Shown here piece by piece: positions 16,906 to 43,900 of a stretch of DNA of 64,000 nucleotides. Each line of letters starts with the position of its first letter. The first letter of the stretch is position 1. A program made the position numbers and the translations under genes. The stretch is from Paragordius varius (lineage: Eukaryota; Animalia; Nematomorpha). The notes beneath the pieces are model-generated. The model was not told where the DNA came from. It made no database searches and saw only the letters and a list, made by a program, of their open reading frames with translations. The stretch lies in contig OZ176053.1 of assembly GCA_964247055.1 (NCBI GenBank), positions 8,246,001 to 8,310,000 on the forward strand, written 5' to 3'.

Positions 16906-17844
16906 ATGAACGGCGTACTTTCAATCCAAAGCCATGTGGTTCACGGTTATGTTGGAAATAAGGCAAGCACTTTTCCCTTACAGCTTCTCGGCTTTGAAGT
17001 AGATCCAATAAATACTGTTCAATTTTCGAATCACACTGGCTATAAAAATGGCTGGACTGGAAATTCTGTTGAACCCATGACCTTACTAGAACTATATGAA
17101 GGACTTAGAAAAAATGATATAGCAGAATATTCTTATATTTTATCCGGTTATATAAAGGATGAAAATTCACTAGAAGCAATCTCTAATATTTTTATGGATC
17201 TTAAAGCTAAAAATCCCTCTCTTACATATGTCTGTGATCCTGTTTTGGGAGATAATGGAAAGCTTTATGTCCCAGAAGAGTTGGTCAATGTTTACAAAGA
17301 GTTAATAATTCCATTGGCTAACATTATAACGCCTAATCAGTTTGAAGCGGAATTGTTATCTGGCATCCCTCTTACGTGTGAAAATAGCGTTGTTGAAATT
17401 ACTAATATTTTTCATAGATTGGATATTGAAATCGCAGTTATAACAAGTTGCAGCCTTAATGACAAATTAGCATGTTACGTAAGTTATCTTAAACCTAACA
17501 GTGAGGATGGTAAAAATCATGTGATTATTAAAGCCGAATTCCCTGTCATAAAGCATATTTTTGTAGGAACCGGTGATCTATTTACAGCTTTATTTCTTGC
17601 ATGGTACTACAAACTTTCACAAAATGATCTTGTTTCCGTTGTTGAAAAAGTTCTTTCCACTGTTCAAACCATCCTAAAAACTACAGTACAACATTATCAA
17701 GATAATCAAAAAACACTGATAAATGTCGACAATGATGCTAAATATTTAGAACTGAAAATTATTGAATCAAAAAATGTCATCGAAAATCCGCCAGACTTGA
17801 TAAAAGCACACATTATATATGACAAACTGTTTAAAATTTTGTGA
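16906..17844 (+). CDS. PDXK: Pyridoxal kinase (ribokinase/PfkB fold), 312 aa, single exon
   Basis: VLSIQSHVVHGYVGNKASTFPLQLLGFEVDPINTVQFSNHTGY, YVCDPVLGDNGKLYVP, ITPNQFEAELL, catalytic VGTGDLF and C-terminal LELKIIESK are colinear with eukaryotic PDXK over its full length in one uninterrupted ORF. Confidence 0.97.
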   Translation: MNGVLSIQSHVVHGYVGNKASTFPLQLLGFEVDPINTVQFSNHTGYKNGWTGNSVEPMTLLELYEGLRKNDIAEYSYILSGYIKDENSLEAISNIFMDLKAKNPSLTYVCDPVLGDNGKLYVPEELVNVYKELIIPLANIITPNQFEAELLSGIPLTCENSVVEITNIFHRLDIEIAVITSCSLNDKLACYVSYLKPNSEDGKNHVIIKAEFPVIKHIFVGTGDLFTALFLAWYYKLSQNDLVSVVEKVLSTVQTILKTTVQHYQDNQKTLINVDNDAKYLELKIIESKNVIENPPDLIKAHIIYDKLFKIL

Positions 17845-18078: not shown

Positions 18079-18893
18079 TATACTATTTACAACTCAAGTT
18101 TACACTCGAACAATTCAAACTCACCCTTAAACCAATCAAATTCTCGAACAATTCAGAGTAACGCTCAAACAATGCAAATTTATCCTAAAAATAAAATATG
18201 TGTTTTTGGGCTAATAAAATTCATTATTAATATGAAATATTTCTTTACGGCCTAATTTTTTTTATATATATAATCCAAATCTATATATTTATAAAAATGG
18301 AAATTGGGGGCTTTGTGATCTGTTTCCGGAAAACCGGTATCATTAATGAATGCCCCGACAATAGCATCGCCCTTTTTTTGAAATAGGCCCCCAGTTCGGG
18401 CCCACCCCATGTGAAAAATGGGTATTTTTGAAAACTCAATCCACAAAAATCGTGTCTTTGAGACAATTTTTCAGAAAACGTGTTAGACCATTCAATTTCA
18501 AATATGATTTTTGTTTAGTTATTTTCGATTGCGCCGAACATAGTCGTCTCGCTCTTTTAATTTAGGCCCTCTTTTTACCCGCTCCCCCCGTAAAATGCTT
18601 TTTTTTAATAAACAAAGTCCACAAAAATAATTTTTTGAATCTATTTTTCCCCCAAATAAACAATACATTAGTATGAATGCACTGTTTAGAAATTCCATGA
18701 GATCATAGCTATTGAATAATGTTTCGAAATAATTCACATATGTGGATCATTTTATTGTCCCTTTTTTCAAATTATCCCCCGCTCCAGAAGTCCGAAGGAC
18801 TTCCTCGGGCTGCGTAGCAGCACGAGATTTACGCTAGTTAATTATATATTAAGGTGCATTCGAATCATTCAAGGGTGATGAGGTGATGGTATA
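18079..18893. mobile_element. Foldback-type MITE (long TIRs with ~20-nt subrepeats), interrupted by a Helitron
   Basis: Left arm tatactatttacaactcaagtttacactcgaacaattcaaactcaccc...; remnant right arm aagggtgatgaggtgatggtata. Same family as 24613-25037 and 28404-28754. Confidence 0.6.
18280..18837 (+). mobile_element. 558-bp non-autonomous Helitron with both termini intact
   Basis: A|TCTATATATTTATAAAAATGG 5' end. GC hairpin ctcgggctgc-gta-gcagcacgag (18804-18826, 9/10 pairs) lies 7 nt before the CTAG|T 3' end. No TSD; inserted between A and T. A second copy of the 5' part is at 45680-46068. Confidence 0.85.
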
Positions 18894-19013
18894 AATAAAT
18901 CTTAGTAAAACGCTTTGGTTATAATAAAAAATATATGCATTTTTGAAGACTGAGTATTTAAATAAAGAGTTTCAAATATCTTTAAAAATATTTTTGATCA
19001 TATAGTGACATAG

Positions 19014-22000
19014 ATGGAATACATATATATATATATTTGTATGGTTTTTCTATTTTTCTATCATGATGTAGTTAGGGCGTAATTTGTTTATACATGAAAA
19101 CTTTGCTGCTAATAACATTTATAAATTTAAAATTCTCAAAAATAAACTTTCCTTCCTCCTTCAATATTTTTTATAAAAATTAAAAAAAATTTACTATGAA
19201 AGCCTAAGTTTTGGCCCAAAACCCCCAATTAATATGTTTTAGTTTCCCAACCAATTAAAAATAATGTGCCATGTAAGTAACCTTAAATTTTATCGGCAAA
19301 TTTTAAATCGGTGGTCATTTTTAAATTATATTTTAGAAATTCTAAACATTTATTCTTTGTATTTTAAATGAAAGTATACATTTTTTATATGACATTAATT
19401 ATAAGAATTTTAAGTGCTGAGATTTTGCATAGTAATGCCAATAACTTAAAAATATATGGTATTTCAAGTAGTTTTATTAATGGATCCAATATCCTGTTTG
19501 ATGGCTTTAAACATATCTGTACACTGTCTTCTAATTCACAATCTTTATCATCAGTAATTGAACATTGGATGACAATTTCGATGACAAATACATTTTCTTT
19601 TATGATTCAAATGGATTCACTTACATTTTATTATGGAAATAACAGTATAATAGAATTAAATAATGGTTTATATAAAACATTAACACAATATTGAATATAA
19701 TTTTTGCTCCTTTTATATCTCCTTAAAATATAAAGTAATTTAATATTCTAATTTCAAATCAATGGTAAAATATGGCTTTTTTGTATATTTTTTAAAATAC
19801 TAGAATAAACATATGGTTTTACTTATAACCATTGCGGTTATTTAACGTTAGTATTATATGTATGTATATATATCGATAAAATGCTATAACCATTGATTCA
19901 ATTTGAATTTTGGAAATATATTGGACTAAAATATTTTATATAATTATAAATATGGCCAAGCCATAAGATTTATTTTTATAATTAATTATAAAAATTAATT
20001 TTCAATCTTATCACACATACTTTTTTTAGTATCTGAAAACACACTAATTAGCACCAAAGTAGGGTTAGTGGAACCTAACAAATTAATGCGCTCACCCTCT
20101 TCACAAGGGGGTGAACGATCTAGGGTACACGCCTCAGATTTAGAAACGGCTTTTCAAACTTGCAATGATGTGATGATAGAATACTCAACATTAAAAAATG
20201 AGGTAGAATGTCGCAAACCAGTTATTGGGAGATATGTGTATGTGGAATTCAAGGGTCCTGTTTTATCTTTTTCGTTGTGTGAAGTGGAGATTTTCGGTCA
20301 TAAACAAGGTTTTAAATTACATAATACATATTGACTTATTTAGTGGCTTCCGACTAATGCTCTATTGGGTTTAAATTCCATAACTGTACATGTTTTTTCT
20401 CATTACTGTTAGTTTTGAGCAGGGGAGTGTCTAGATCCTCTATAAAATTGAAATTCTTACTCTTAAAAATAAAAGGAAAAAAGAGATTATAAAATATGTA
20501 TTTCTGAAACATATCCTACCTAAATTGTATGAATTGAATTTTCAAACTTACCTTGTAAATTGTTCACATATATTTATAAATATATGGATATGTATCCAGT
20601 AGTAACTTATATTACAGGGAGATGTCAAATATATCTACCTTTTTATTTTTGATCTTAGTCTCGTATTTCTTTTAACACCCAAAAAATTTATTGTACCTTT
20701 ACTTTCGAAAATTACGATAGCCAATCGTAACTCACACAAATCAGCAGGTAAACAGCTCTGATCTACTAATCTTATTCTGATTATATTGCTTGAACAATAT
20801 ATTTTAAGATATAAACGCGAAGTGCTTGTACCACCTCCAACTAGGTTGTGGGTATTTTCAAGCCATCATTTTCATTTTTTGACTAGTTTAAGGATTATAT
20901 TAAATACGTAATTCTAATTATGGACCTTAAATAAAAGCATGTACATATGTCACCATTACTCCCTCAAGCTCATTAGGCTTCAACATATGAAATAATGAAT
21001 TACTACAATTAAAATTTAAAAAAAAGTTATCAAATAGTGAATAAAAATTTGATGTGGATGACTATATATTTTTTTCACCATAGTCAATATGAGGGGGATA
21101 CTTAAAGAGATAATAAGCAGTCATTTGCACCGTTTTCAAAATTCTTTAGATTTTTTTATCAATTTTTATTTTCTGTCCACTACGATCTGCCAGCAGTAAG
21201 TTTATTAATATATCATTTTAAAAAAAAGTCAATTATTATATTATATTTTAACTAGTTCTTGTAATTGGTCATTGACCCTTAGCAAGATCTTTTTACCACA
21301 TAATTTAAGGTTTGAACTAATTTCTTTTATGTGGATATCTTATGCATAGAAAATTTGGTTATGATAACGAATCAGAAATACATTTTTAAATCTACGCGCC
21401 AAAAGCTAGCGACCCCAGGAAATGGAATTCTTAACGAGCCTGATGCATGTTGGTCTCTCTCAATAAATGATTTCCGTAAGCCATATATTATTTTGGTTTA
21501 TAATTTTGTCAAGCTTGAAACAAGATTTTTAAAAATCAAAATATAATTTTAAAATTTTTAATTTAATAAATACGGATGATTTAGAGTTTTTTAAATTATT
21601 TTTCTAGTTAAAATGTCTCTTTCTGGCATATAAAATGCAGTGCTTTTTAATCGAAATTTTCTTGATTGGATCAATTGCCTGAATCTTTTCTTATTTTTAA
21701 AATAAGGTCATTTATTTATATTTTTAATTCCTTTTAAAAAATATTTAGATTATCAACAAATATATTGGGTGGTGGATTTTAATACATATGGTTTGGCTAA
21801 AACCCCGTTATATTTTATCGACACCATAATTTTTCACACAAATGGTAATTATATGTCCATACGTTAATTTTATTAAAGTTATAATTAATGAAAATGTTAT
21901 GATAACATATTTTATATAAGCTAGAAAAATTCCCAATTATTTTACATTTTTAGGAATTACAAATGGTATCATATGGAACTATAAAATTTTTACAATATCT

Positions 22001-25000
22001 CAATTAACCATAAATAATCATACTCGGCAATTATGTATAGAGGGCGTTGTTCCAACAAATCAAGACCTTTATGTTTTTAAGTATTTTCCATAATGCTTTG
22101 AATAATGTATATTATAAAGTTATAATAATAGTGTGTGAACTTTTAGGACAAGTAAACTCTTTTTCATTACCCTTTACTGCCAAAATATAATTCATTAAAT
22201 ATTATATCGGTTGATTTTTTTTGTTTTTCTTCATCTTTAGGTAAATATTTGCTTAAACTTAAATAATCGAATTTTTATATATAAAAAAATAATGATTAAT
22301 GTGGTTTATTATGCAGTAAATATTGAAATAATACGGACAAAACGTAAAATTATAAATACAATTTTTTAAAAAAGACTAAAACTTTAATTAATCGGACAAA
22401 AATCATTGAATACAATCGTAAAATACATGATAGATTGTGTTACCAATTTAAATCTCTATTTTATACCTTGCGGTTTAAAAACAATTACCTATATGTAACA
22501 TAGCCAAGATGTATGGTTGTCTTTTAGAAAAAATATTTGTATTTATATTTTTAAGCTTTGTCCGTATAATTTCGATTTTTACTTAAAAATATATTGTTGT
22601 TAAAGCATAAACAGAAATTTATGGTGCATTGGAACAAGTGTTCTATTTTCGACCACCATGCCTCTATGTGAAGTCGAATTGTATGGAACTAAATTGGGTA
22701 TACCCTCTAAGCTAAACTTTATGTAAAAATAGTTGCACCTGCCTACAGTAAAAAAAATATAAAGGCAAAACCTAAAAAGTGATTTAGACTTATAAATCAT
22801 TGATTTTTGATTATTACCTGGCGATCGTTCTGGCTCGCAAAATGAAAAATAGTGATGTAGTTTGGCAACACACTCAATTTTAAATTGATTTTAGGACTGG
22901 AGGATAATCTAACATCAATATTTATAAAAAATAATGTTTATAATTCGACTTTTTTTTAATTTTTCCTCTCATTTGTTTTTAAATTTACTCAATTATTACA
23001 GAGTCGGCCCATACTTATGCATATGAACCGCAAGATGTTAACCTTGAAAGACCAGTACCTAATGTAAAGTATGCTTATATTGTATCTCTCGTTTAATAAT
23101 AATAGTAAATGTATATCCCTACAATCTGAAATAACTCTATCGCTTGTAAACAACACAAGCAAAAATCAGTTTTTTCGCATTCAATACATATCACTACATT
23201 CCATTTTTTTGTCACCGGCTGGCAGTATACCCAAAGTTACAGCTTCGGTTTTATGGCTTAAGGGATTAAATTCTAAATCAAATATAAGATATCCATGCGC
23301 AACCAAAAATATTGGTAATAAAATTTCATTGTTTAATTTACGATTATTATGAAAAAAATAAACACGAGTTTTGAGAAGATTTTTAACATAACAATAATAT
23401 TTTAAATTAGTCATAATTAAAAATTTTTAGAAAACGACAAATAATATTTTTAAATATATTTAATTATCGTTTCTTTTAAATATTTTATTGCAGGAGAATC
23501 TATAAATTTTGATTGTAAATGCATAAAAGGAAACGCAATACATATTGCTATTGATCCTCCACAAATAGTCAACATGACCATATGCAACCTTGTAATTTCC
23601 GTGACAGTAGACAGTTAGTTAAATTTGGGAAAAATTTAAAATGTTATGTATTATATGGTGATAATATGTAAATGATATGCCATATGATTTTGGGTCCATT
23701 TTAAGATGAATATATTGTATAAATGATCTTTAGGTGTGGAACTAAAATTATTTACTAACACAAAGTATCGAGAGATGGATTTTATGCTGAAAAACAGTAT
23801 TTATGGCAACTTGGCCCCTAAAGAAAAGATAAAAATGAAGTCTAATCTAATGGTTCAATGTACAATGAATCTAAATGTTCCCTATGAATGTGCATGGCTT
23901 AATGATAAGGGAATCGTAATATCATCTATGGCTAATACAATTGCTTTACATAATGATAACATAACTGATGGGCTTACATGTTCTTGTGTGTCAGTCTTTT
24001 TTCATCCAATCAAATTTGAAAAGACAATAAAGTTATTAAATTTGGGTAGGCAGTTGAAATTTATTTATGGCGATTTATTTGGTTAAAACTTATATAGATC
24101 TACCTTTCCCCTTTTCAAGAATAAAGAACCGTAACTGAAAATGTTCGGTTTTTGTTTCGCAAAAAATCGTTTTCTGTTTTATAATTTTATGGTCAAATGG
24201 TTTGATTTTGGTTTAATATTTTAAAAATTACAGATATTAAATTTTGAGTTAGAATTTTAATATTAACTGTAAAAATCTAATCAAAACCATAACTGATAAA
24301 GTTTGCTATATTTCTCTAACATATCTAAAAAATACATATTTTTGTGATTTATATATAGAAAATAAGTAATTATTGATATATAGAATTAAATACAAATTAA
24401 AAATAAAATATTTAATATAAGATTTCCTGATATACTAATTTTATCTAACATTCCACATATCTGCAAGGACAAATGGATGTTTTGCCCGCTCGACTAAAAA
24501 AATCAGCTATTGGTGTTTTGAGCACTCTCGTTTCGTCACTGACTTCATTCCAAAAAGTAAATGTTTTTGGTAACTATGTTTTCAACAAATATATTGTTTG
24601 ATAAAATTAGTTTACACCATTTACACTCGAATTATCATAATATTCAAATATATCTCCAAGACTTTCAAATTCATTTAACATATCAATTTCACCCTAAACC
24701 ATTCTAAATAACCCTACAAAAATAATATGTGTTTATCTAGACTATTAAATCATAATTGACACTTATGTGGCTGGCATTATCATTTTTTTATTTAATACTC
24801 TTGTCAATGATATTTAAATTGATAGGTGCTTTTTGTTTATGAAAATGCATTATTAAGGAACGTAAATTTAAATTTATTTCATATTCTTAAATAATTGATT
24901 TTTTATAAATCTTAATCATGAGTGAATTTAACCCAGAAACACTTTACTATCTATAGAGTCTATTTTAAACGGCGTAAATTTGAAATTTTTAAGGGTGAAT

Positions 25001-28000
25001 TTGAATGGTTCAAGTGTTTTATTTAAAGTATGGTATATTTAATCTTAAAATTATTTTTTCCTAATTTATGACAAATAAGCCATATTGGATGGAACACGAA
25101 TATACCGACCTTCACCCCATCAATGCCGCAATCGAAGACGTGAACAGCCACGTAAAAAATGGAATGTTTTATGGCTTAGCTATAATTCATCCTTTTTTAG
25201 AACCATGGAATCATCTTATTACTTATGATGATAACGTAATGGTTCAAATGAAGACATATGAAACAGATTTTACTGGTTACAATAATTAATAAACCACTTT
25301 TTTTCGGGTTAAAATTAAAGAATCAAATATTTAAGAAAATATTACAATGACCATCTTCGTTACATATAAAAGGTTTATGTCATAAAAATTAACCTATGTT
25401 ATCTACCAGTTGTCACTCTTTTTTGACATTTATAAAGAATCACCACTTACCCAAACCTAAATACAATCTAATTTTGATTGAACCGCTTTGAAACCGGTGT
25501 TATCCTAAAGTAGAATTTTTCCTTATAATGCTGTTGTAGAATTTTTTCTCATTTACAGTATTCCATAATAAAATAATTATAAATCAAATTAAATAGTATG
25601 GAGTCAATCGATTCATGCAGACCTTTTTAAAAAGAAACTCTATTAATCCAAAAAGAGGATTAAATAATATATTTTAAACTTATTTATATTATTTAACTAG
25701 AAATCTCCTAATAATTAACCTATTGTATATTTAGGTGCTAGTTAAGATATTATAAAACTTGATAATAATATATTAAAATGAAAAGGTTTAATCTGACTTT
25801 TTTTCATTTTCCTGTATATCAATTTGTAACATGATATATGTAGTTTTGCTGAGAAATGGGTCTTATTCTTATCATTTTATCTTAATTTTTAGAGCTGCTG
25901 GAGAATGCACAGTTTCATCTGTAAAGTTTTTTCCTCTCAATATTGTTTTGCTCCATAATCACTTATATTTTATTGGTAGATCTTAAAGTTCACATTCACA
26001 ACGATCGAATATTAATAATAAGTTGGGAAGATTTGCCTATCGGATTACCCTGCACCATAAATAAAGAAGCCCAACAAGGATTTCATTTTGATGGCTGGTT
26101 TTCAGGGACTAAAAAAGTGAGTCAAAGGAAAATACATATTTTAAAAAGGGGTATCTTCATTCAATATCCCCCAGGGAATCGTATTTTACTCAGATGCCAG
26201 TATAGCAATGAAAATCATGAATTTATACAAAGGGTCATTATTATTCCTTATGGTATATAAATAATTTGACAGAACATATAAAAATAATATATAATCATCG
26301 TGTGTTATGCACAAAAAAGTAATAATTCAATTGTCCAAATTTTTGTCTTTTCAAAAATTAATATTTTTATAAAGCGTAATCTGTTAAGGCGGTAGAACTA
26401 ATATGATACAATACAAAAAAACAGGTAAATATACGTCTCGCGACTTTACCCAATTTTCAGACTACATTAAATTTTTGTAACTGTTTATCATAAAGCATCG
26501 AATTCTGCATATAAATATGGATATTACGTACCATAATTTTCAACTCTTTTCCCATAAATTTGTCTCAATTTGAAAAAGATGGGGCGATTCATAATCTTCA
26601 ACTTTGTGTCCGATATGTTTTGCATTTTTTATTATATATACATATTTTTTTCTAGAAATTCGAATGGTTTACAATTATTCCAGCATATCTCAAACGGTAA
26701 ACATTACATGTGGAATAGATGTGTCTCTAAATTATACCCATGTAGACTATATTCATGTAAGTAATTGCGTTTCTAATCAAATTTTAGCAACATTCCGTAA
26801 AAAAGGAATTTAATAACAAACATGTCTAAAAATGTTTAAAAACTGTTTTATATTAATGGATGTTGAGAATATAACCCAATAACTTCTTAAAGTGTTATTT
26901 TGAACCCCATAAAACTTTTCAAAAACAAAATGTTTTACATTTATATTGCGAACCCTAAAAAACAGCGGCATCAATTTTTTATTTAAGCAAGTGTAATATA
27001 TCCGTATGATACAATATACCCTCGAAATCCCATCAAAATTATAAATTTAATAAAGTGTTAAGCTTTTCTGAAGAAAACAAATATTCTCAACAGAATATAT
27101 TTAGATTTAATCACGCCCGTGACTTTTTTGCGTTAAAATCACATGGCTGTATTACATATTGTGTGAATTTTCGAACCCATAAACGGAAAAAACAAAAAAA
27201 TGTAATTATATTTAACTTAATATAAAACATCTCAACTTATTCAAAAAAGGAGATTTGACATAATGTGCGCGATGCCAATTTTTTTGGCTAAATATGAGAA
27301 ATAACATGACTTTTTGAATTGGACGTGTCTCAAACAAATATTACCACATGAAATCTCGATAGTTTTAAAAATTAGTCCAAAATTTGGGTATTTCACAATA
27401 CAATCAAAGTTTTAAGAATTAGTTTAAATCGAAATTCCTTGATTTATTTATCAAACAAATCATAAAGTTAGTTAGTAGAAAGAGAAATATTTTGCCAAAT
27501 TACAAAAGTATGTAGTAAAAAAATTTACATATCTAAAAATCATTTTGAAATGTTGAACAAACCCATAATTTTTAACACACATTTTTTGTTAAATAATAGA
27601 TGAAATGGTACATAAATTATGATTTGGATGCCACTAACCACAGCACAACTTTAAGTTTTCAGAAATCATGTTATGAAAGCTTTTGGGTTAATTGCGAAGG
27701 CGAGGGCATCATAACCTATAAGTCGCATCAAAAATTGATACATATTCATAAAACAGTCTTTCTAGACAAATGTAAGCTCATATTTTATATATTGACTCGT
27801 CTAAAAAAATTTTTACTTTTTGGGATATATATATTCCATAGTAATTTAATAAAAAACTACACAAAATCCTTGTGTACGAAAAATTAATATTAAGTCTCAT
27901 CTTAAATTTTTAAAAATTATCATTTCTTGAACACTCAATAAACCATGCCTCCATAAGAAGTAGTTTCACAAATTAGGGTCGTTTAAGCGGAAATCTTATA

Positions 28001-28391
28001 GGATAAAGTTATTTATTCCTGGTTTAAATCTTCAGAGGTTAACTGTCATAAACATTATGTTGATAATTAATTTTAATATAAAGCAATTAAATTATTTTCA
28101 CAATGATCAAAAATATAAAACTTTGAGACGAGATATATATATATCAAAATATTTTTGAAAATTGTTGCGTCGCGACGTGTTTATAAAACTTAAAATAATT
28201 ATTAGTTTTCTATATAACGGTAAACATTTTTTTATTCTTTCTGCTATTCAGGTAGTCAAAAATCACAAGTTCAACTTACCAAGCAATATTTTATGCATGG
28301 TTTAAGCCTAATTTTCTTGCTTGCCTCCATTTGTATGTGGGTTTATATGCACAAACAAAAATGTATTACAATACATATTTCCATATTATAA
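19014..28391 (+). CDS. Uncharacterised type-I membrane protein, ~860 aa: signal peptide, 3x F-type-lectin/galactose-binding-like domain, Ig-like, unassigned Cys/Trp module, FN3-like, Ig-like, TM, short tail
   Basis: Exons (+): 19014-19078, 19415-19644 (or 19665), 20030-20308, 21350-21475, 21954-22080, 22615-22697, 23002-23068, 23106 (or 23160)-23314, 23494-23613, 23734-24031/24045, ~24468-24570, ~25080-25275, 25980-26252, 26656-26756, 27600-27771, 28252-28391. Most junctions are GT-AG and phase-consistent; those between 24031 and 25080 are unresolved. Motifs: signal MEYIYIYICMVFLFFYHDVVRA; domain ends CRKPVIGRYVYVEF..SLCEVEIFG, CIGTSVLF..PLCEVELYG and CIKGNAIHI..MTICNLVI; Ig-like C..W..C (VQC..CAW..LTC and NITC..MKWY..VNC); FN3-like LKVHIHNDRILIISWEDLP; TM GLSLIFLLASICMWVYM followed by HKQK. 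Confidence 0.72.
24613..25037. mobile_element. Foldback MITE copy in an intron of the receptor gene
   Basis: Termini tacaccatttacac and gtatggtata. Arms carry ttcaaattcaccc-type subrepeats (aagggtgaatttgaa on the right arm). Confidence 0.6.
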
Positions 28392-28403
28392 TAAAATTAA
28401 TAA

Positions 28404-28754
28404 TATACCATTTACAGTTCAAATTCACTCTTAAAAAATTCAAATTCACTTCGAACAAATCAAATTCACCCTTGAACAATTCGAATTCACCCTAAAAATA
28501 AATTGTGTTTTCGAACTAATATAACTCATTATTAATATAAAATATATCTTTATGGCAAAATTTATTATTTAAGTATTATTTTAATTTAAAACAAAATTTT
28601 ATTTTTTAAAAATATATAAAAATATAGGTGATTTTTAATCTTAAAAAACATACAATTTATTTGAGGGTAAATATGAATTGATCGAGGGTGAATATGAATT
28701 GTTCAAGGGTGAAGTTAAATTGTTTAATGATGAATTTAAATTGTAAATGGTATA
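28404..28754. mobile_element. Foldback MITE with ~105-bp inverted arms made of 20-21-nt tandem subrepeats
   Basis: Left arm 28404-~28510 (tataccatttacagttcaaattcactcttaaaaaattcaaattcac...) is the imperfect reverse complement of ~28648-28754 (...gagggtgaatatgaattgttcaagggtgaagttaaattg...gtaaatggtata). Confidence 0.75.
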
Positions 28755-29078
28755 TTTTATTTGAAAGAATTCATTTCTAAAATATTTTTTTGGATAAGGT
28801 AAAGTGCTAAATAAATTTTTTATATTAGTCAATCGAGCAAAATCCGCCAAAACAATGCAAGGCTATCAAGAATTGGAATAAGTCATCAAACAGACCAGAG
28901 ATATTACCCAAATAAAAAACTAATATTTATTGGATATAATTAAAAATTTACGTGATTTGTAAAAATATTTTTAAGAAATACCAAACAATGTAAGTATTAA
29001 ATAAATATTTGTAAACGCACATAAAATTGACTAGAAAACATATATATTATATAAATATATACAAATATATTATAAAAA

Positions 29079-37900: not shown

Positions 37901-40900
37901 ATGGGGTCGAAGTTAATTGCCCCGCAGGCAACATTACACCAGAAGATAGTGAAGTGAATGAGGAATAACTATTTTGCGTCTGATTTATATTAAAATAATT
38001 CAATGAAGAAGGAACTAAATATGGATTTGTTTCATTTAAGAAGCCATTATTAGTTATCGTTGATGATGTTTGAAGTGTTGGAGTTGCGGACAAAAAACAA
38101 TTCATGTTATCATTCAATAAATTGGCTGGTATGCCATTCATATAAGAGGGTAAATTAAGGTTAATCTTATTGGTGGGATTATGGTTATGAATATGGCCAT
38201 TGTTTGTGTGTTGCATGAGAACCAAACTATTTTTTAAAGAATCAATCTCTAGTTGAGATTGTTTAGCTCTAAAAGCTAACAAATAACTCTCCTCTTGGGC
38301 CATTTTCGATTTTTCTGCTAGTATTTCTGTAGTTTCTTCAGATTTTTTCTGTGATAAAAGCAAAGTTAGTTTGATAAAAAAATATGCGGTATATGATAAA
38401 GATATAAAGTGTCGAAATAAAAGTTAAATTAATCAAATATATTAATAATTGTTACACTATTCCAACCTACAGTGGCACCCCTATCATGACCCTCCCCCTC
38501 ATGAGCTTTACAGATGAAACAGCGTTTATAAAGTATTTGGCTCATACTGATGATCCTGCACTTTTCCAATTTAAAGTCCTAAATCGTTTTAATGTACATT
38601 CCTACAAGCTTATTAGTTTGTGGTAAGGAGCCCTCATAAAGATTCAAAAACAATCAAATAATCATTACATTTTTTTAAATAATTAATTATAATATTTCAT
38701 GAGAGGAAAGCCGTATATATTCAACCACGGGGTGGATATAAAGGAGTACACTCCATAAGGTGTTCAACAAAGACTGTTATTCATTGATTGTAATAAAATG
38801 GTCAATATTGTTTTGTTTGTCCACATTTATATGTTTATAACTTAATAAATATTTAATATTCAATCTATAGGTTAAAATAAATTAAACTAACTCCATTGCA
38901 AAACAATTTTAATTTATCTAAATATATGTTGTTGTAAGCTTAAGACATCTAATATTAATTTAAAAATATTAAAAAGTTTTGACCAAATTTAAACTAATTT
39001 TGTCGCAAAACATATTAAAAAAATTTTAGCGTCTGACTCCCTATAAAGACCATTAGCTACTTATCATTTTGTTTGGCGCATATATTTTTTGCAAATTTTG
39101 TATTTAATTAAAGTAGTTTAATCCTCAACTATTTTTAAATATTTAATAAACCATTTCCATCTTAAATCTAACAAACGTGATTGCAAAATAAAAATATAAT
39201 CTGTATATTTCTGAATTGTACCAATGCCTTAGTTATTTGATCATTATCCTTTTTCAGTTGTTCCAATTGTTCTTCAAGGTCTTTACGCTTTTTCTCAATT
39301 TCCTCAAGTCTTTCCCGTTCACGTTGTGCCATTTGTTTTAACATCTAAAGAAAATGTCAAATCTATTATTAATCTATAAAACCGAATTCGAAGATAAATT
39401 TAAAAATGTAAAAATTTTTATTGTAATAAAAAAACTCGGATATTCACGGCAAACATTTTATTACAATTATGTTAATTATCAAGTAAAAGTTTTAAAAAAC
39501 GAAAATACCGTAAGTAAGGGTTTTAATCCGTATTCAAAATACGTGAATTATTATATAAAAAGTTGATAATATTCCATAAAAAATAAACTTCACGTCTAGT
39601 CTTTTCTTCTTTAGCTTGAATCTTCATTTGTTGAACTTCCAATGTATCGGGTTTACGTCTTCGCAAAAATAAGTCATGATTCCCAATGCATAATTCTAAA
39701 ATCTATACAAATTATTTTTGAATCATATTCTTAATTTAGTCTGATACAAAAGATTTTTTAAAAATTACAATTTTAATGGTGTGGGTTTTGCTTGCATAAA
39801 ATACGAATGGAGGGCTTTGTTTGTCAAGCAGTTTGATGGTAAACTAATGATGATAAAAAAATTAATCAACGTGTTAGCACAATATCGAATCTCAGATTGT
39901 AATTCAAATAAGCAAATTATAAAAAGTTTAAAAAATTTTTACGATATATTTCTACCCTTTTTCCATCCATAGACACGATTCGTATTTCATTCCAGGGAAA
40001 AAATATTTTAGGTGTCAATTTATTTTCTTTTTCGTAAATGCTTAATCCTAATGCAGAAACACCCAACCAAAGTTCAGTTTTCTTCTTATTCTAAAATAAT
40101 AGAGAAAAATGAGTATAGAATAACACATAAGCTTTAATAAAATATTTTTTTTGGAGACAGATTTTGCTGATAATACATTTTAATAATATATTAATTGAGC
40201 CAAAGCTATAACCACCATGCAATCCTTTGAATCCTTCGTTGCTGCCAATATGGGCGTTGAAATCGCCAGCTATAATGATTTTGTCCGATGTAGGAGTTTT
40301 GAATGAGATGTTTTGAAATTGGGTCCAGAAAGCCTCTTTAATTACGTGGGGAAGACCACGTTGAGGCGCTTACAATGAGATTATATTGTATATTAAATTT
40401 TGTATTAACAATCTGATTTGTATAACTGTCGCTGTGCCTAGTAATTTGAAGAATGTTATCTCTGTGCTCATTTTTTATTATTATTGCAACTCCAGCTTGA
40501 GATTGCTTTCCTTGGGTAAAAAATAATGTAAAGCCTTTTAAATTCTTTAGACCTGATGTTTTATATCTTGTTTCTTGGAGGCAGCATATATCTACGCCAA
40601 ATTTTTCGATTGTGTCTAAAACTATCCATAGTTTTTTGTTCATAGTACCAACATTCCAAGTGCCAATTTTGAGACGCTTAGGGATGGAATTATTTATATT
40701 TATCTTATTATAGTTTCCATATTTTGGTTTAACTTTGGTGTTGTTTGTTGGATGGATTTGTATATTTAATAATCATTATAGCTGGCGATTTCAACGCCCA
40801 TATTGGCAGCAACGAAGGATTCAAAGGATTGCATGGTGGTTATAGCTTTGGCTCAAGAGATAAAAAAGGAGAAACTCTGCTCAAACTTTGCTCATCTATA

Positions 40901-43900
40901 AAACTCCATATTGCTAATACCCTATTCACTAAAAAAGACAGCAAACTGATTACCTATACATCAGGCTCACAAAAATCAAGAATCGATTATATATTAACAG
41001 GAGAAAACCTGAGGCATCTGATTCAAAATACAACTACCTATAATACGGATACACAACACAAATTACTTGTAAGTACATTAAAATAAAAAAAATCAAACTT
41101 ACCAACCATACCAACCCAAAAATACCTCCAAACTAAAACACACAGAAATAAATAATAATTTTGTTAATAGTACAACAAATATAAAAAAATAGATTTTCAA
41201 TCAGTAGAGGAAGGATGGAAAAACTACAAAACGATAATGAATAATGCTGAAAAATGGTGTGGAAGGAAAAAGAAAAGCTCGCGACAACCCAAATGGTGGT
41301 GGGATGACAGTGTGAAACCCTTACTCCTGAGAAAAAACGAGCTACATAAAAAATGGAAGAAATCAAAAAATAATAAAGACCAAATCATATACAATCAATA
41401 TAAAAAACTGGTAAACAAAACTAATAAAGATTTAAAAAGTAAACGTAGTATGGAAATGGCGGACGAGCTGGAAAAAGACATAAATAATATGACAATATTT
41501 AGAAAAATCAAAAACTACAATCAAAACCAAAAGGATATTAAAAATATTCGTTGCGTTAAAGATGATGAACGTAATATTATTATCAATCCCAACGACATAA
41601 TAAACAGATGGGAAAAATTTATGAAAATTAAATTTAACCCCCCTGAATCTAAGGTTACTACACATGAAAATCCTGTCATACAAGGTCCCATTCAGGTATT
41701 CACTCCAGAAGAAATAGCAATAGTAATGAAAAACACGTAATCTAACAAAGCCACTGGGCCCTCTGAGATCTCTGCAGATTTAATGAAGGCCACACCGACA
41801 ACTGTTAAATTTTTGGTAGAGCTGTTTAATTTGGTATACAAAAACAACACAATACCAACCGATTGGGACAAAAGCTACATTTATCCCGTTTATAAAAAAA
41901 AGGGATGCCCTTGATTGCTCCAATTATCGCCCACTAAAACTTTTGGAACACGGTATGAAAGTCTTTGAAACAGTTATCAAAAATAGAATTAAAAATATAA
42001 CAATAAATAAAAATCAATTTGCTTTTCAAGAAAGTAAAAGCACATCGGAACCCATTTTTATTTTAAATCGCATGCAAGAAAAATACCTAGCAAAAGGTCA
42101 AAAGCTGTTCCACATCTTTATAGATCTGGAAAGAGCGTTGTGACACTATACCCAGACACCTCATGATTGAGGCATTAAGGTACCAAAAATTCGAAGAATA
42201 TTTAATAAAATTAATAATGCTCCTGTGTGAACATGCACAAAGCTGCGTTAAAACACCAGTCGGAAACACAAATTATTTTAATATTAATATAGGCCTCCAT
42301 CAGGGCTCAACTCTAAGCCCACTACTGTTTATAATAATAATGGATTATATAAGCAGAGACTTTGCAGCTGTTTTACCATGGAACATGCTGTATGCCGACG
42401 ATTTGGTTATAACAGCAAAAACATCACATGAACTGAAAAGTTCATACCTCAAATGGCATACCTGTTTCCAAAAACATGGGCTAAAAATAAACATAGGAAA
42501 GACGAAGGTAATGATCACAGGAGATGAAAAAAGAACCATAAAATACCCTTGTTCCATTTGTTACAAAGAGGTTAAAACAAATTCCATTCTATGTACATCG
42601 TGTAAAATGGGCTCATAAAAAATGCTCTAACTTGAAAGGAAAATTAATTGACAATAAAAATTTTATATGCCAAAGCTGTATATCAGGGAAACCAAACATC
42701 CCTAAATAAAGGGAGTTTAGTATAGAAAATTTTAAAAATCGTGAATGATTTTACCCATTTAGGTAATAGTAATAATAATGGGGACCCTCAAACAACCATA
42801 TCACATAGAATCAAACTCGGCTGGGCAAAATTTAACCAACTCAAATATGTATTAACACATAAAGACATAACCGTAAAAAATAAAATCAAAATGTGTAGAG
42901 TGGGTGTCCGCCCTACCCTTAGCCTGCGAAACCTGGGCAATCACAAAAACATTAGAATCGAGATTGAAAAGAACGAAAGACAAAATGCTAAAATATATGA
43001 TGATAAATTCTAGAACTAGAACCAATAACAGCTTTTATCAGAACAAATAGACTTCGGTGTTTTGGACACATAGACAGATCCAGTATAGACTCACCTGCAA
43101 AGGAAATTCTTGATTTACAGATTTCTGCCCCCAACCGTAAAGGGAGGCCTAAAACAACTTGGACTCAAATCATAGAACAAGACTTTAAATTCCTGAACAT
43201 ACCTCGAAACGCAACAAATGATAGAGACATATATCGTAAATTAATCCATGGAATCCCAATAACTGGGCCAAACCAATAATACATATTAATTTTAAGGACG
43301 CAAAATATTTAAAAGTATTTATTGAATGCGTTGTGAAGCCGATAAATATAATATAAATTGGGTTACATTAAATTGGATTATAAGCATTAATGAAAATTTC
43401 AATGAATGATGTGTCGATTCCTTTTTAGATCTATTCGATTTCATTACATAATATAAAGCTTTAAAACAGCTCCAATGTGATTGATAAAGGCTAACAAAAA
43501 AACACGGAAATTTGCCTTTCAAGCTTCCAGAGCTGACACAATTTTTAAAACACCAACAGGGGGACCTACCTATGAAACTTAACCAATTTATCGATTAAAA
43601 ACAAAATACAGGTATTTTTCGTACTGTTTACAATAAATGACATTTAGAGCAAAGATTTTCGAACAATGGAAATTATTGAAACCCGTATACTTACTTAAAT
43701 TAATTGTTCCAGTATTTATGTAAAAAATGAAAAATATTTGTCTATATTCTTTTTATTGTTAAAATTGTTAAAATTGGCTTTTATTATGCTAAATATTCGA
43801 CCATTCATTTATTACAAAAAATAAAATAGAGATAGCCATTATAATTCATTGCTCATAATAAAATGACAAAATGTTTTACTAGATAAAAATATTATTACAC

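Follow-up and report, generated by a model that had tools for sequence, protein, structure and literature searches.

A putative 17-exon hairworm gene for a membrane protein with F-type-lectin-like and immunoglobulin-like modules

Introduction

What is encoded by the run of small, AT-rich open frames at 19014–28391 of a 64 000-nucleotide stretch of the Paragordius varius genome (Nematomorpha), and are the lectin-like modules at its start F-type lectin domains (FTLDs) that could still bind fucose? The whole stretch, hereafter the window, covers positions 8 246 001–8 310 000 of the forward strand of contig OZ176053.1 (assembly GCA_964247055.1, 110.6 Mb in 44 contigs) and has a GC content of ~27%; coordinates below are those of the window unless another contig is named. 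A previous examination of the letters and open reading frames (ORFs) of this DNA, here called the sequence-only reading, had proposed a mosaic receptor in which three lectin-like modules, immunoglobulin (Ig)-like and FN3-like domains and a transmembrane (TM) helix are spread over about 16 exons.

In FTLDs the fucose motif is HX24RXDX4(R/K), which corresponds to His52, Arg79 and Arg86 of the eel agglutinin AAA, and the domain also has a vicinal disulfide, Cys82–Cys83, as well as Cys108, Cys124 and Cys146, all in the numbering of the eel lectin (PMC5712786). The architectures in which FTLDs occur are diverse and include the membrane-bound Furrowed, and the fucose motif is held to be conserved in the mosaics (PMC5712786; PMC12221842). 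The analysis described here suggests that the locus is very probably a real, single-copy gene of 17 exons for a cell-surface protein, that its relationship to F-type lectins is solid for the C-terminal half of the first module alone, and that the fucose-binding residues are missing from every module.

Results

A 17-exon gene model in a single frame

The gene model was assembled from lists of AG and GT sites, with each split codon checked singly for frame. By this procedure the + strand of 19014–28391 can be read as 17 exons separated by 16 GT–AG introns of 37–1041 nt, which join in frame without an internal stop into 2685 nt, i.e. 894 codons plus TAA. Twelve of the 16 donors start with GTA, a pyrimidine-rich run precedes most acceptors, and the introns that lie between modules are in phase 1 in seven of seven cases, a classic mark of shuffled extracellular modules. 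The short 37-nt intron at 23069–23105 is required, because read-through would reach a stop at 23094.

The open frames themselves are longer than the composition of the region would lead one to expect. From 19.0 to 28.4 kb the + strand has open stretches of 119, 111, 111, 108, 95, 94, 76, 74, 72 and 71 codons, so that ten reach at least 70 codons and six at least 90 in the interval 19000–28400. With the base composition of the region, ~8% of random codons would be stops. When the region was simulated 500 times under a first-order Markov model, the corresponding means were 2.6 (maximum 10) and 0.5 (maximum 6), and no simulation equalled the real sequence in the summed length of all stretches of at least 50 codons (1608 against a maximum of 1593). 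The minus strand looked random by the same measures (five stretches of at least 70 codons, one of at least 90, sum 779). Base composition points the same way: GC amounts to 33.4% in the model exons, 23.4% in the introns and 33.0% in the adjoining pyridoxal-kinase-like gene, an intronless + strand ORF of 312 codons at 16906–17844 that was identified by eye and served as the composition control, and the 90-nt GC peaks of the region fall nearly all on model exons. Chance ORFs as the source of the open frames are ruled out by the simulation excess, the contrast with the minus strand and the exon GC.

The sequence-only reading thus fared well in its general claim of some 16 in-phase exons, as an in-frame multi-exon chain with a signal exon and a TM exon does exist, and failed in one of its junctions. 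The splice from 24031 to 25080, which that reading had itself doubted, is out of phase; a further exon at 24468–24556 restores the phase and lengthens the protein from the ~860 residues estimated earlier to 894. In-phase alternatives to the model exist at the start (ATG 19368) and at two acceptors (22606 and 25201).

Similarity to F-type lectins is concentrated in the C-terminal halves of the modules

Exon 3 (20030–20308) carries most of the evidence for homology. It encodes the C-terminal half of module 1 (92 aa), ends in GRYV...LCEVEIFG and has a loop insertion of ~20 aa. A phmmer search among 1.84 billion cluster representatives found 50 matches to it at E values up to 0.001, with the best stretches all within residues 26–92 and mostly within 56–92. 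The matches that were checked come from Saccoglossus, Babylonia, Xenopus, fishes, the nemertean Lineus and Mya, and include proteins named fucolectin, FUCL7-like, pentraxin fusion protein-like and fucolectin tachylectin-4 pentraxin-1 domain protein. Pfam recognised 16 of the 17 matches that were scanned, each with one to eight F5_F8_type_C_2/F5_F8_type_C domains and sometimes with added pentraxin, WSC, CTLD or other modules; Ig or FN3 domains were found in none of these 16. Because no match spans the whole exon or exceeds 47% identity over its short matched stretch, exon 3 finds neither its own protein nor an orthologue in the library. Among proteins of known structure in the PDB, both domains of the striped-bass F-type lectin FBP32 (3CQO) matched exon 3 best (E 0.0019), and the eel agglutinin (1K12) was matched as well.

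From the library matches of exon 3 we cut 125 FTLD units and built a profile of our own, the consensus of which is that of a textbook FTLD (S-C-T-H-T, N-R-E-D-C-C-S-E-R and L-T-L-C-E-V-E-V-Y-G). Run against the 1907 ORFs of the window on both strands, this profile ranked exons 3, 10 and 7 as its top three, and hhalign assigned probabilities of 97.7% to exon 3, 92% to exon 7 and 47% to exon 10. The hidden Markov model (HMM) alignment assigns three Cys in exon 3, and two in exon 10, to the positions of Cys108, Cys124 and Cys146; in module 2 the assignment was made by eye. The three C-terminal strings quoted by the sequence-only reading are indeed present at exons 3, 7 and 10, and they differ in how much of the F-type strand G-R-Y-V-x-[IV]...L-x-L-C-E-V-E-V-x-G they retain: the strand is full in module 1, reduced to LCEVELYG in module 2, and degenerate (ICNLVI) in module 3. 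Of its claim that all three modules end in this strand, the part on modules 1 and 2 proved genuine, and module 3 is marginal at a profile E of 0.018–0.07. Just two sites in the 110.6-Mb genome fit a DNA pattern that codes for L-C-E-V-E-x-[FY]-G, namely exons 3 and 7, which lie 2.4 kb apart; the reversed pattern, used as a control, fits none.

Taken module by module, true FTLD descent appears very probable for module 1 and probable for module 2, and for module 3 it is a tentative suggestion with the odds slightly against it. A comparison of all exons in pairs found only exons 3 and 7 to be alike (z 5.6, through LCEVE), and since no other exons resemble each other the modules did not arise by recent duplication.

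The remaining lectin-like exons are shorter and harder to place. Module 1 (~169 aa) begins in exon 2 (19415–19644; open frame of 108 codons), which by eye shows NL, SSS, FDG, a single Cys and W-x-x-I-S-M arranged as in the FTLD consensus, and for which the PDB sequence search gave no match. Module 2 (143 aa, the right size for an FTLD) is spread over four exons. Exon 4 (21350–21475; phase 1 on both sides; GC peak 0.47) holds its start, ENLVM..., with one Cys. Exon 5 (21749–21844) has Y-W-V-V-D-F where an FTLD has the strand W-W-R-V-D-L, and was placed by hhalign on profile columns 53–61, which cover that strand, at a P of 0.006 in a single comparison that HMMER did not find significant. Exon 6 (21954–22080; phase 2 out) provides the middle of the module, with one Cys that by eye is the Cys108 equivalent, and exon 7 (22615–22697, with the acceptor at 22606 equally in phase) its end, with two Cys and LCEVELYG; the sole PDB match of exon 7 was to FBP32, at an E of 0.83. 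For the N-terminal half of an FTLD, a jelly-roll beta-barrel of ~140 residues, the consensus is NLA...QSS...A-[IV]-D-G...S-C-x-H-T...W-W-R-V-D-L, with the Cys50 equivalent; read by eye, modules 1 and 2 show NL, SSS/QSS-like, x-D-G, one isolated Cys and W-x-x-[IV]-x-[LMF], in that order.

Module 3 is the shortest (~110–130 aa) and is without most of the stretch that precedes the first Cys. A linker and its short start lie in exon 8 (23002–23068), directly before the 37-nt intron, its body with two Cys in exon 9 (23106–23314; open frame of 94 codons; a GC peak), and its end, with the strand CIKGNAIHI...ICNLVI, in exon 10 (23494–23613). The PDB search lent exon 10 no support as lectin-like, and a match to an antifreeze protein (E 0.66) was regarded as chance. 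Exons 2, 4, 6, 8 and 9 gave no significant HMMER or hhalign match to the FTLD profile.

The fucose-binding residues are missing from all three modules

The residue two positions after the Cys50-equivalent Cys, which is His in the fucose motif, is L, S and S in modules 1, 2 and 3. No R-x-D-x4-[RK] was found in exons 2, 5–6 or 9, where module 1 retains only Q-M-D, and no CC dipeptide occurs in the lectin-like exons, so the vicinal Cys82–Cys83 pair is missing from three of three modules. The earlier remark that the canonical motif is not visible is borne out by these comparisons. Without the His/Arg/Arg triad and the vicinal Cys pair, canonical binding of L-fucose is improbable, and the protein most likely does not bind this sugar in the canonical way. 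We call the modules FTLD-like, and not F-type lectins, because the defining features were looked for and were not found.

Probable Ig-like domains and a predicted membrane anchor in exons 11–16

An entire domain, probably Ig, is contained in exon 11 (23734–24045, donor directly after), a phase 1-1 exon. Its pattern consists of Q-C, A-W 12 residues on, and then D-G-L-T-C-S-C, in keeping with the Ig pattern of a strand-B Cys, a strand-C Trp some 12 residues further and a strand F of the D-x-G-x-Y-x-C type; a weak match to titin I-set domains (E 0.16) and the ESM Atlas features, by which nine of the ten best clusters were Ig at 0.93 with recognition just below threshold, agree with this assignment, and Pfam gave no match. 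The Ig domain that the sequence-only reading had placed after the lectin-like modules is probable.

The region between this domain and the next comprises exon 12a, the newly added exon (24468–24556; phase 1 in, phase 0 out; donor AAA|gtaaat), and exon 12b (25080–25275). Exon 12a forms a GC peak of 0.43 amid an intron of 23% GC, and its open frame of 50 codons would not be significant alone. Exon 12b is Cys-free, has an open frame of 74 codons and a GC peak of 0.46 from near 25048, and matched nothing in PDB or Pfam. Together the two exons supply ~95 aa without Cys; were exon 11 joined straight to the acceptor at 25201, a strong one, the frame would hold as well and the Cys-free stretch would be shorter.

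One beta-rich domain, again confined to a phase 1-1 exon, is encoded by exon 13 (25980–26252; open frame of 111 codons); it contains a pair of Cys at a distance of 55 residues, with a Trp in between. The earlier label of FN3-like for this exon found no support and is not kept; an FN3 domain would be a Cys-free beta-sandwich with a strand-B Trp and a tyrosine corner. No supporting match was found in Pfam, PDB or the ESM Atlas, where a score of 0.87 to clusters of bacterial InlB repeats was discarded, recognition being far below threshold. When the single-sequence AlphaFold2 model of the exon was compared by Foldseek, the top rows were mostly Ig and not FN3, every one at an E of at least 1.1. 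By its Cys...Trp...Cys pattern the domain looks more Ig-like than FN3-like.

A third putative Ig-like domain would be split between exons 14 and 15. Exon 14 (26656–26756) holds the first half, with N-I-T-C and three N-x-S/T sites, and its Pfam match to V-set_CD47 (E 0.098) is weaker than the cut-off; exon 15 (27600–27771; open frame of 95 codons; a GC peak) holds the second, with K-W-Y...F-W-V-N-C. A PDB match of exon 15 to IL-18 (E 0.8) was regarded as chance. In exon 13 and in exons 14–15 the Cys...Trp...Cys pattern is more loosely spaced than in exon 11.

At the two ends of the protein lie the features that would place it in the membrane. Exon 1 (19014–19078; phase 2 out, joined to 19415) encodes Met and a hydrophobic signal-type stretch; the alternative start, ATG 19368, lies inside the exon 2 open frame and also has a signal-like stretch after it, and the best 12-residue Kyte–Doolittle mean is 2.64 from 19014 and 1.92 from 19368. 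Exon 16 (28252–28391) encodes a stalk, a TM helix of ~21 aa, H-K-Q-K and the end of the tail before TAA, with an AATAAA overlapping the stop codon, and provides the only 19-residue window of the model with a Kyte–Doolittle mean above 1.6 (1.83; other exons at most 1.3). The signal-type and TM exons proposed earlier are thus both present, and the predicted cytoplasmic tail is short: it was put at ~14 aa and comes to ~13 residues, H-K-Q-K and ~9 more. An N-terminal signal-type stretch, one C-terminal TM helix and basic residues beyond it are what a type I single-pass protein would have, and the predicted ectodomain contains ten N-x-S/T sites.

Relatives within the genome

A paralogue count, which the sequence-only reading had proposed, was run genome-wide with exons 3, 11 and 13, and each of these matched itself alone. 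Nine other genome sites code for LCEVE, of which one resembles the end of an FTLD. This site, C2:3395031-3395210 on the + strand, is an isolated FTLD-like C-terminal exon (...L-H-L-C-E-V-E-V-Y-H, profile E 8.6e-4) and no close paralogue of the gene studied here. A genome-wide search with PF22633 and PF00754, two Pfam models that recognise genuine FTLDs, matched three other loci and not the lectin-like locus. That the gene is single-copy and without detectable close kin fits a lineage-restricted gene, and it fits a poorly sampled phylum equally well.

Neighbouring features and repeats

A GC-rich patch at 18714–18899 (up to 49% per 90 nt) ends in a TATA-like box, TATAAATA, at ~18890, some 120 nt upstream of the ATG at 19014; an upstream ORF of three codons lies at 18935. 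The patch with its box may be the promoter of the lectin-like gene.

At the other end, a dispersed short repeat at 28402–28590, partly made up of 21-nt units of the CAAATTCACCC type, begins 11 nt past the stop codon and, with an inverted partner at 28685–28766, forms a hairpin like that of a miniature inverted-repeat transposable element. Related copies lie upstream of the gene (18102–18283) and, inverted, in the intron before exon 12b (24974–25017). A first look found at least 3310 candidates for this repeat genome-wide, with ~90% identity among the copies that were scored. Beyond it an NHL/lin-41-like gene, a neighbour of the locus, extends on the minus strand from ~29.1 kb of the window, and at 40338–43013 several ORFs on both strands, with endonuclease-like and reverse-transcriptase-like stretches recognised by eye, are putative pieces of a non-LTR (long terminal repeat) retrotransposon.

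Discussion

A proposed membrane protein with an FTLD-derived tip

The reading that we prefer, and to which we give a probability of about 60%, is that of a membrane protein with an FTLD-derived tip that lacks the fucose site, an Ig-like stalk and a TM helix, with a role in adhesion or in a receptor complex. One intact gene would give one transcript and a type I membrane glycoprotein of ~894 residues. Outermost, after a cleavable signal peptide, would stand three tandem FTLD-derived modules with the jelly-roll fold, of which the first bears an inserted loop and the third is short and degenerate. Next inward would come an Ig-like domain, a Cys-free stretch of ~25–95 residues and two more beta-sandwich domains, probably Ig-like as well, and at the base a single membrane helix with a basic tail of ~13 residues. 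At their membrane-distal position the lectin-like modules may serve as binding units, or as spacers, for a protein ligand or a glycan other than fucose. Given so short a tail, the protein would either work in adhesion or bind the ligand on behalf of a separate subunit that signals. The analysis shows the exons with their phases, a coding signal, the two hydrophobic ends, homology of the C-terminal lectin strand and loss of the fucose motif, whereas the single transcript, the fold of every module, the ligand and the way of signalling are inferred from these.

Several points weigh against this reading. The gene model is known from genomic sequence alone, and its start codon and the junctions across 24046–25275 have in-phase alternatives. 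Pfam, consulted at E values up to 10 with 15 stop-to-stop pieces and seven trimmed exons, returned no family (rows for HcgC and DUF7027 were noise), and the N-terminal halves of all three modules went undetected when HMMER and hhalign were run exon by exon. The tiny E values at the top of the library search do not imply close kinship, because they add up a 35-residue match that recurs as many as 11 times. The profile E of exon 3 (1.3e-9, columns 88–146) is partly circular, the profile having been built from that exon's own matches, and the values of exons 10 (0.018–0.07) and 7 (0.11–0.26) are independent of this circularity but weak. The single-sequence AlphaFold2 model of exon 11 has a pLDDT of 31, too low to use, and that of exon 13, which is all-beta, a low 52.8. 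Finally, neither an orthologue (exon 3) nor a paralogue (exons 3, 11 and 13) was found that could serve as a test of selection.

Could the locus instead hold two transcription units or two products, a secreted three-module lectin-like protein from exons 1–10 and a separate Ig/TM product, or else a soluble isoform? If the 120-nt intron after exon 10 were retained, the frame would add a Ser and then meet TAG (23614–23618), where the open frame 23454–23615 ends; because read-through past the donor at 23613 stops after a single codon, a soluble three-module form would need nothing but this retention. The joining of exons 1–10 to exons 11–16 is, moreover, read from genomic DNA only. Against such a division, exons 10 and 11 join cleanly in phase 1 across an intron of just 120 nt whose acceptor is good, and exons 11–16 have no Met-plus-signal start of their own, with no other start exon among the GC peaks. 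The want of a separate signal peptide for the Ig/TM half favours one gene over two, and we consider two products unlikely.

We hold it to be similarly improbable that the locus is the decaying relic of a once-canonical multi-FTLD/Ig gene, drifting in an AT-rich genome with its frames still open by recency. Such decay would account for the loss of sugar-binding residues from every module and for the truncation of module 3, and it would suit a gene in which no exon falls into a Pfam family and for which no relatives show constraint. However, 894 codons have stayed open at a random stop rate of ~8%, none of the 16 splice-site pairs is broken, GC in the exons stands 10 points above that of the introns, at the level of the neighbouring gene, and the structural Cys are kept in exons 3 and 10.

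Least probable among these alternatives, and in our view very unlikely, is that the modules belong to another jelly-roll family of the galactose-binding-like kind, whether discoidin/FA58C or one that is lineage-specific and unnamed, and share with F-type lectins only a C-terminal strand that arose by convergence, since, although significant similarity is confined to the last 35–60 residues and Pfam does not part FTLD from FA58C (its F5/8C-type models cover FTLDs too, which makes the two hard to separate by this means), the 22 of the 50 exon 3 matches that were checked by Pfam or by name were all fucolectin-type save one coiled-coil false positive (P0011), with no classical FA58C protein among them, the HMM alignment of exon 3 also covers two internal FTLD Cys, and a Pfam-positive discoidin locus of the same genome (C6:5481302-5482072) is unmatched by the FTLD profile.

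Comparison with known lectin and receptor architectures

The closest resemblance of an FTLD-derived tip is to the fucolectins and multi-FTLD proteins (AAA, 1K12; FBP32, 3CQO; those of Saccoglossus, Xenopus and bivalves), which like the locus have tandem modules of ~140–170 aa with the same C-terminal strand, and with which the equivalents of Cys108, Cys124 and Cys146 can be aligned. Unlike them, the P. varius protein is without HX24RXDX4(R/K) and Cys82–Cys83, and the N-terminal halves of its modules are unrecognisable by profile; it also has Ig-like domains and a predicted membrane anchor, whereas known fucolectins are mostly soluble.

Drosophila Furrowed is a membrane-bound mosaic of FTLD, CTLD and CCP repeats (PMC5712786, Fig. 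1). Both it and the protein described here would be ecdysozoan type I membrane mosaics with an FTLD-type module in the ectodomain, but Furrowed has one FTLD, a CTLD and many CCP repeats, whereas the P. varius locus has three FTLD-like modules and Ig-like domains with neither CTLD nor CCP, and no sequence kinship beyond the domain type was seen between them.

In outline the protein also recalls neuropilins, DDR1/2 and Caspr, in which jelly-roll modules of the FA58C/discoidin kind tip single-pass membrane proteins; neuropilin in particular has a short tail and signals through a partner. These receptors differ in the subfamily of the module, FA58C, and in their partner domains (CUB, MAM, kinase, laminin G), and they are not known to be homologous to the locus outside the shared superfold. 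A joining of Ig superfamily and lectin-type domains in one polypeptide, as at the locus, is found in the molluscan FREP, CREP and GREP proteins. In these proteins, however, which are secreted and have their Ig domains at the N-terminus, the lectin domain is fibrinogen-related, C-type or a galectin; they belong to diversified multigene families, in contrast to the single-copy hairworm gene.

In two reviews the partners of FTLDs in mosaic proteins are CTLD, HTLD, pentraxin, CCP, TM and FA58C, with Ig and FN3 unlisted (PMC5712786; PMC12221842). Judged from these partner lists, it is plausible that FTLD-like modules, Ig-like domains and a TM helix form a new domain combination, which would be moderately surprising.

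Implications

The locus neither opens nor settles a long-standing question; its main value lies in an annotation gap and in a lectin fold without its sugar site. Because the small AT-rich exons of this locus escape both ORF tracks and Pfam, the annotation of the genome probably misses other genes of this type. A membrane protein that carries three FTLD-like modules, all motif-less, on a stalk of Ig-like domains would be a further case in which the fold has been re-used beyond fucose, from a very poorly sampled parasite phylum. A bolder and unlikely possibility is that the gene represents an undescribed class of membrane receptors of hairworm-type animals, in which FTLD modules freed from fucose stand on an Ig stalk and meet a new glycan or protein ligand of the host or of a partner; if true, such a class would be an ecdysozoan counterpart of the molluscan lectin-plus-Ig recognition proteins.

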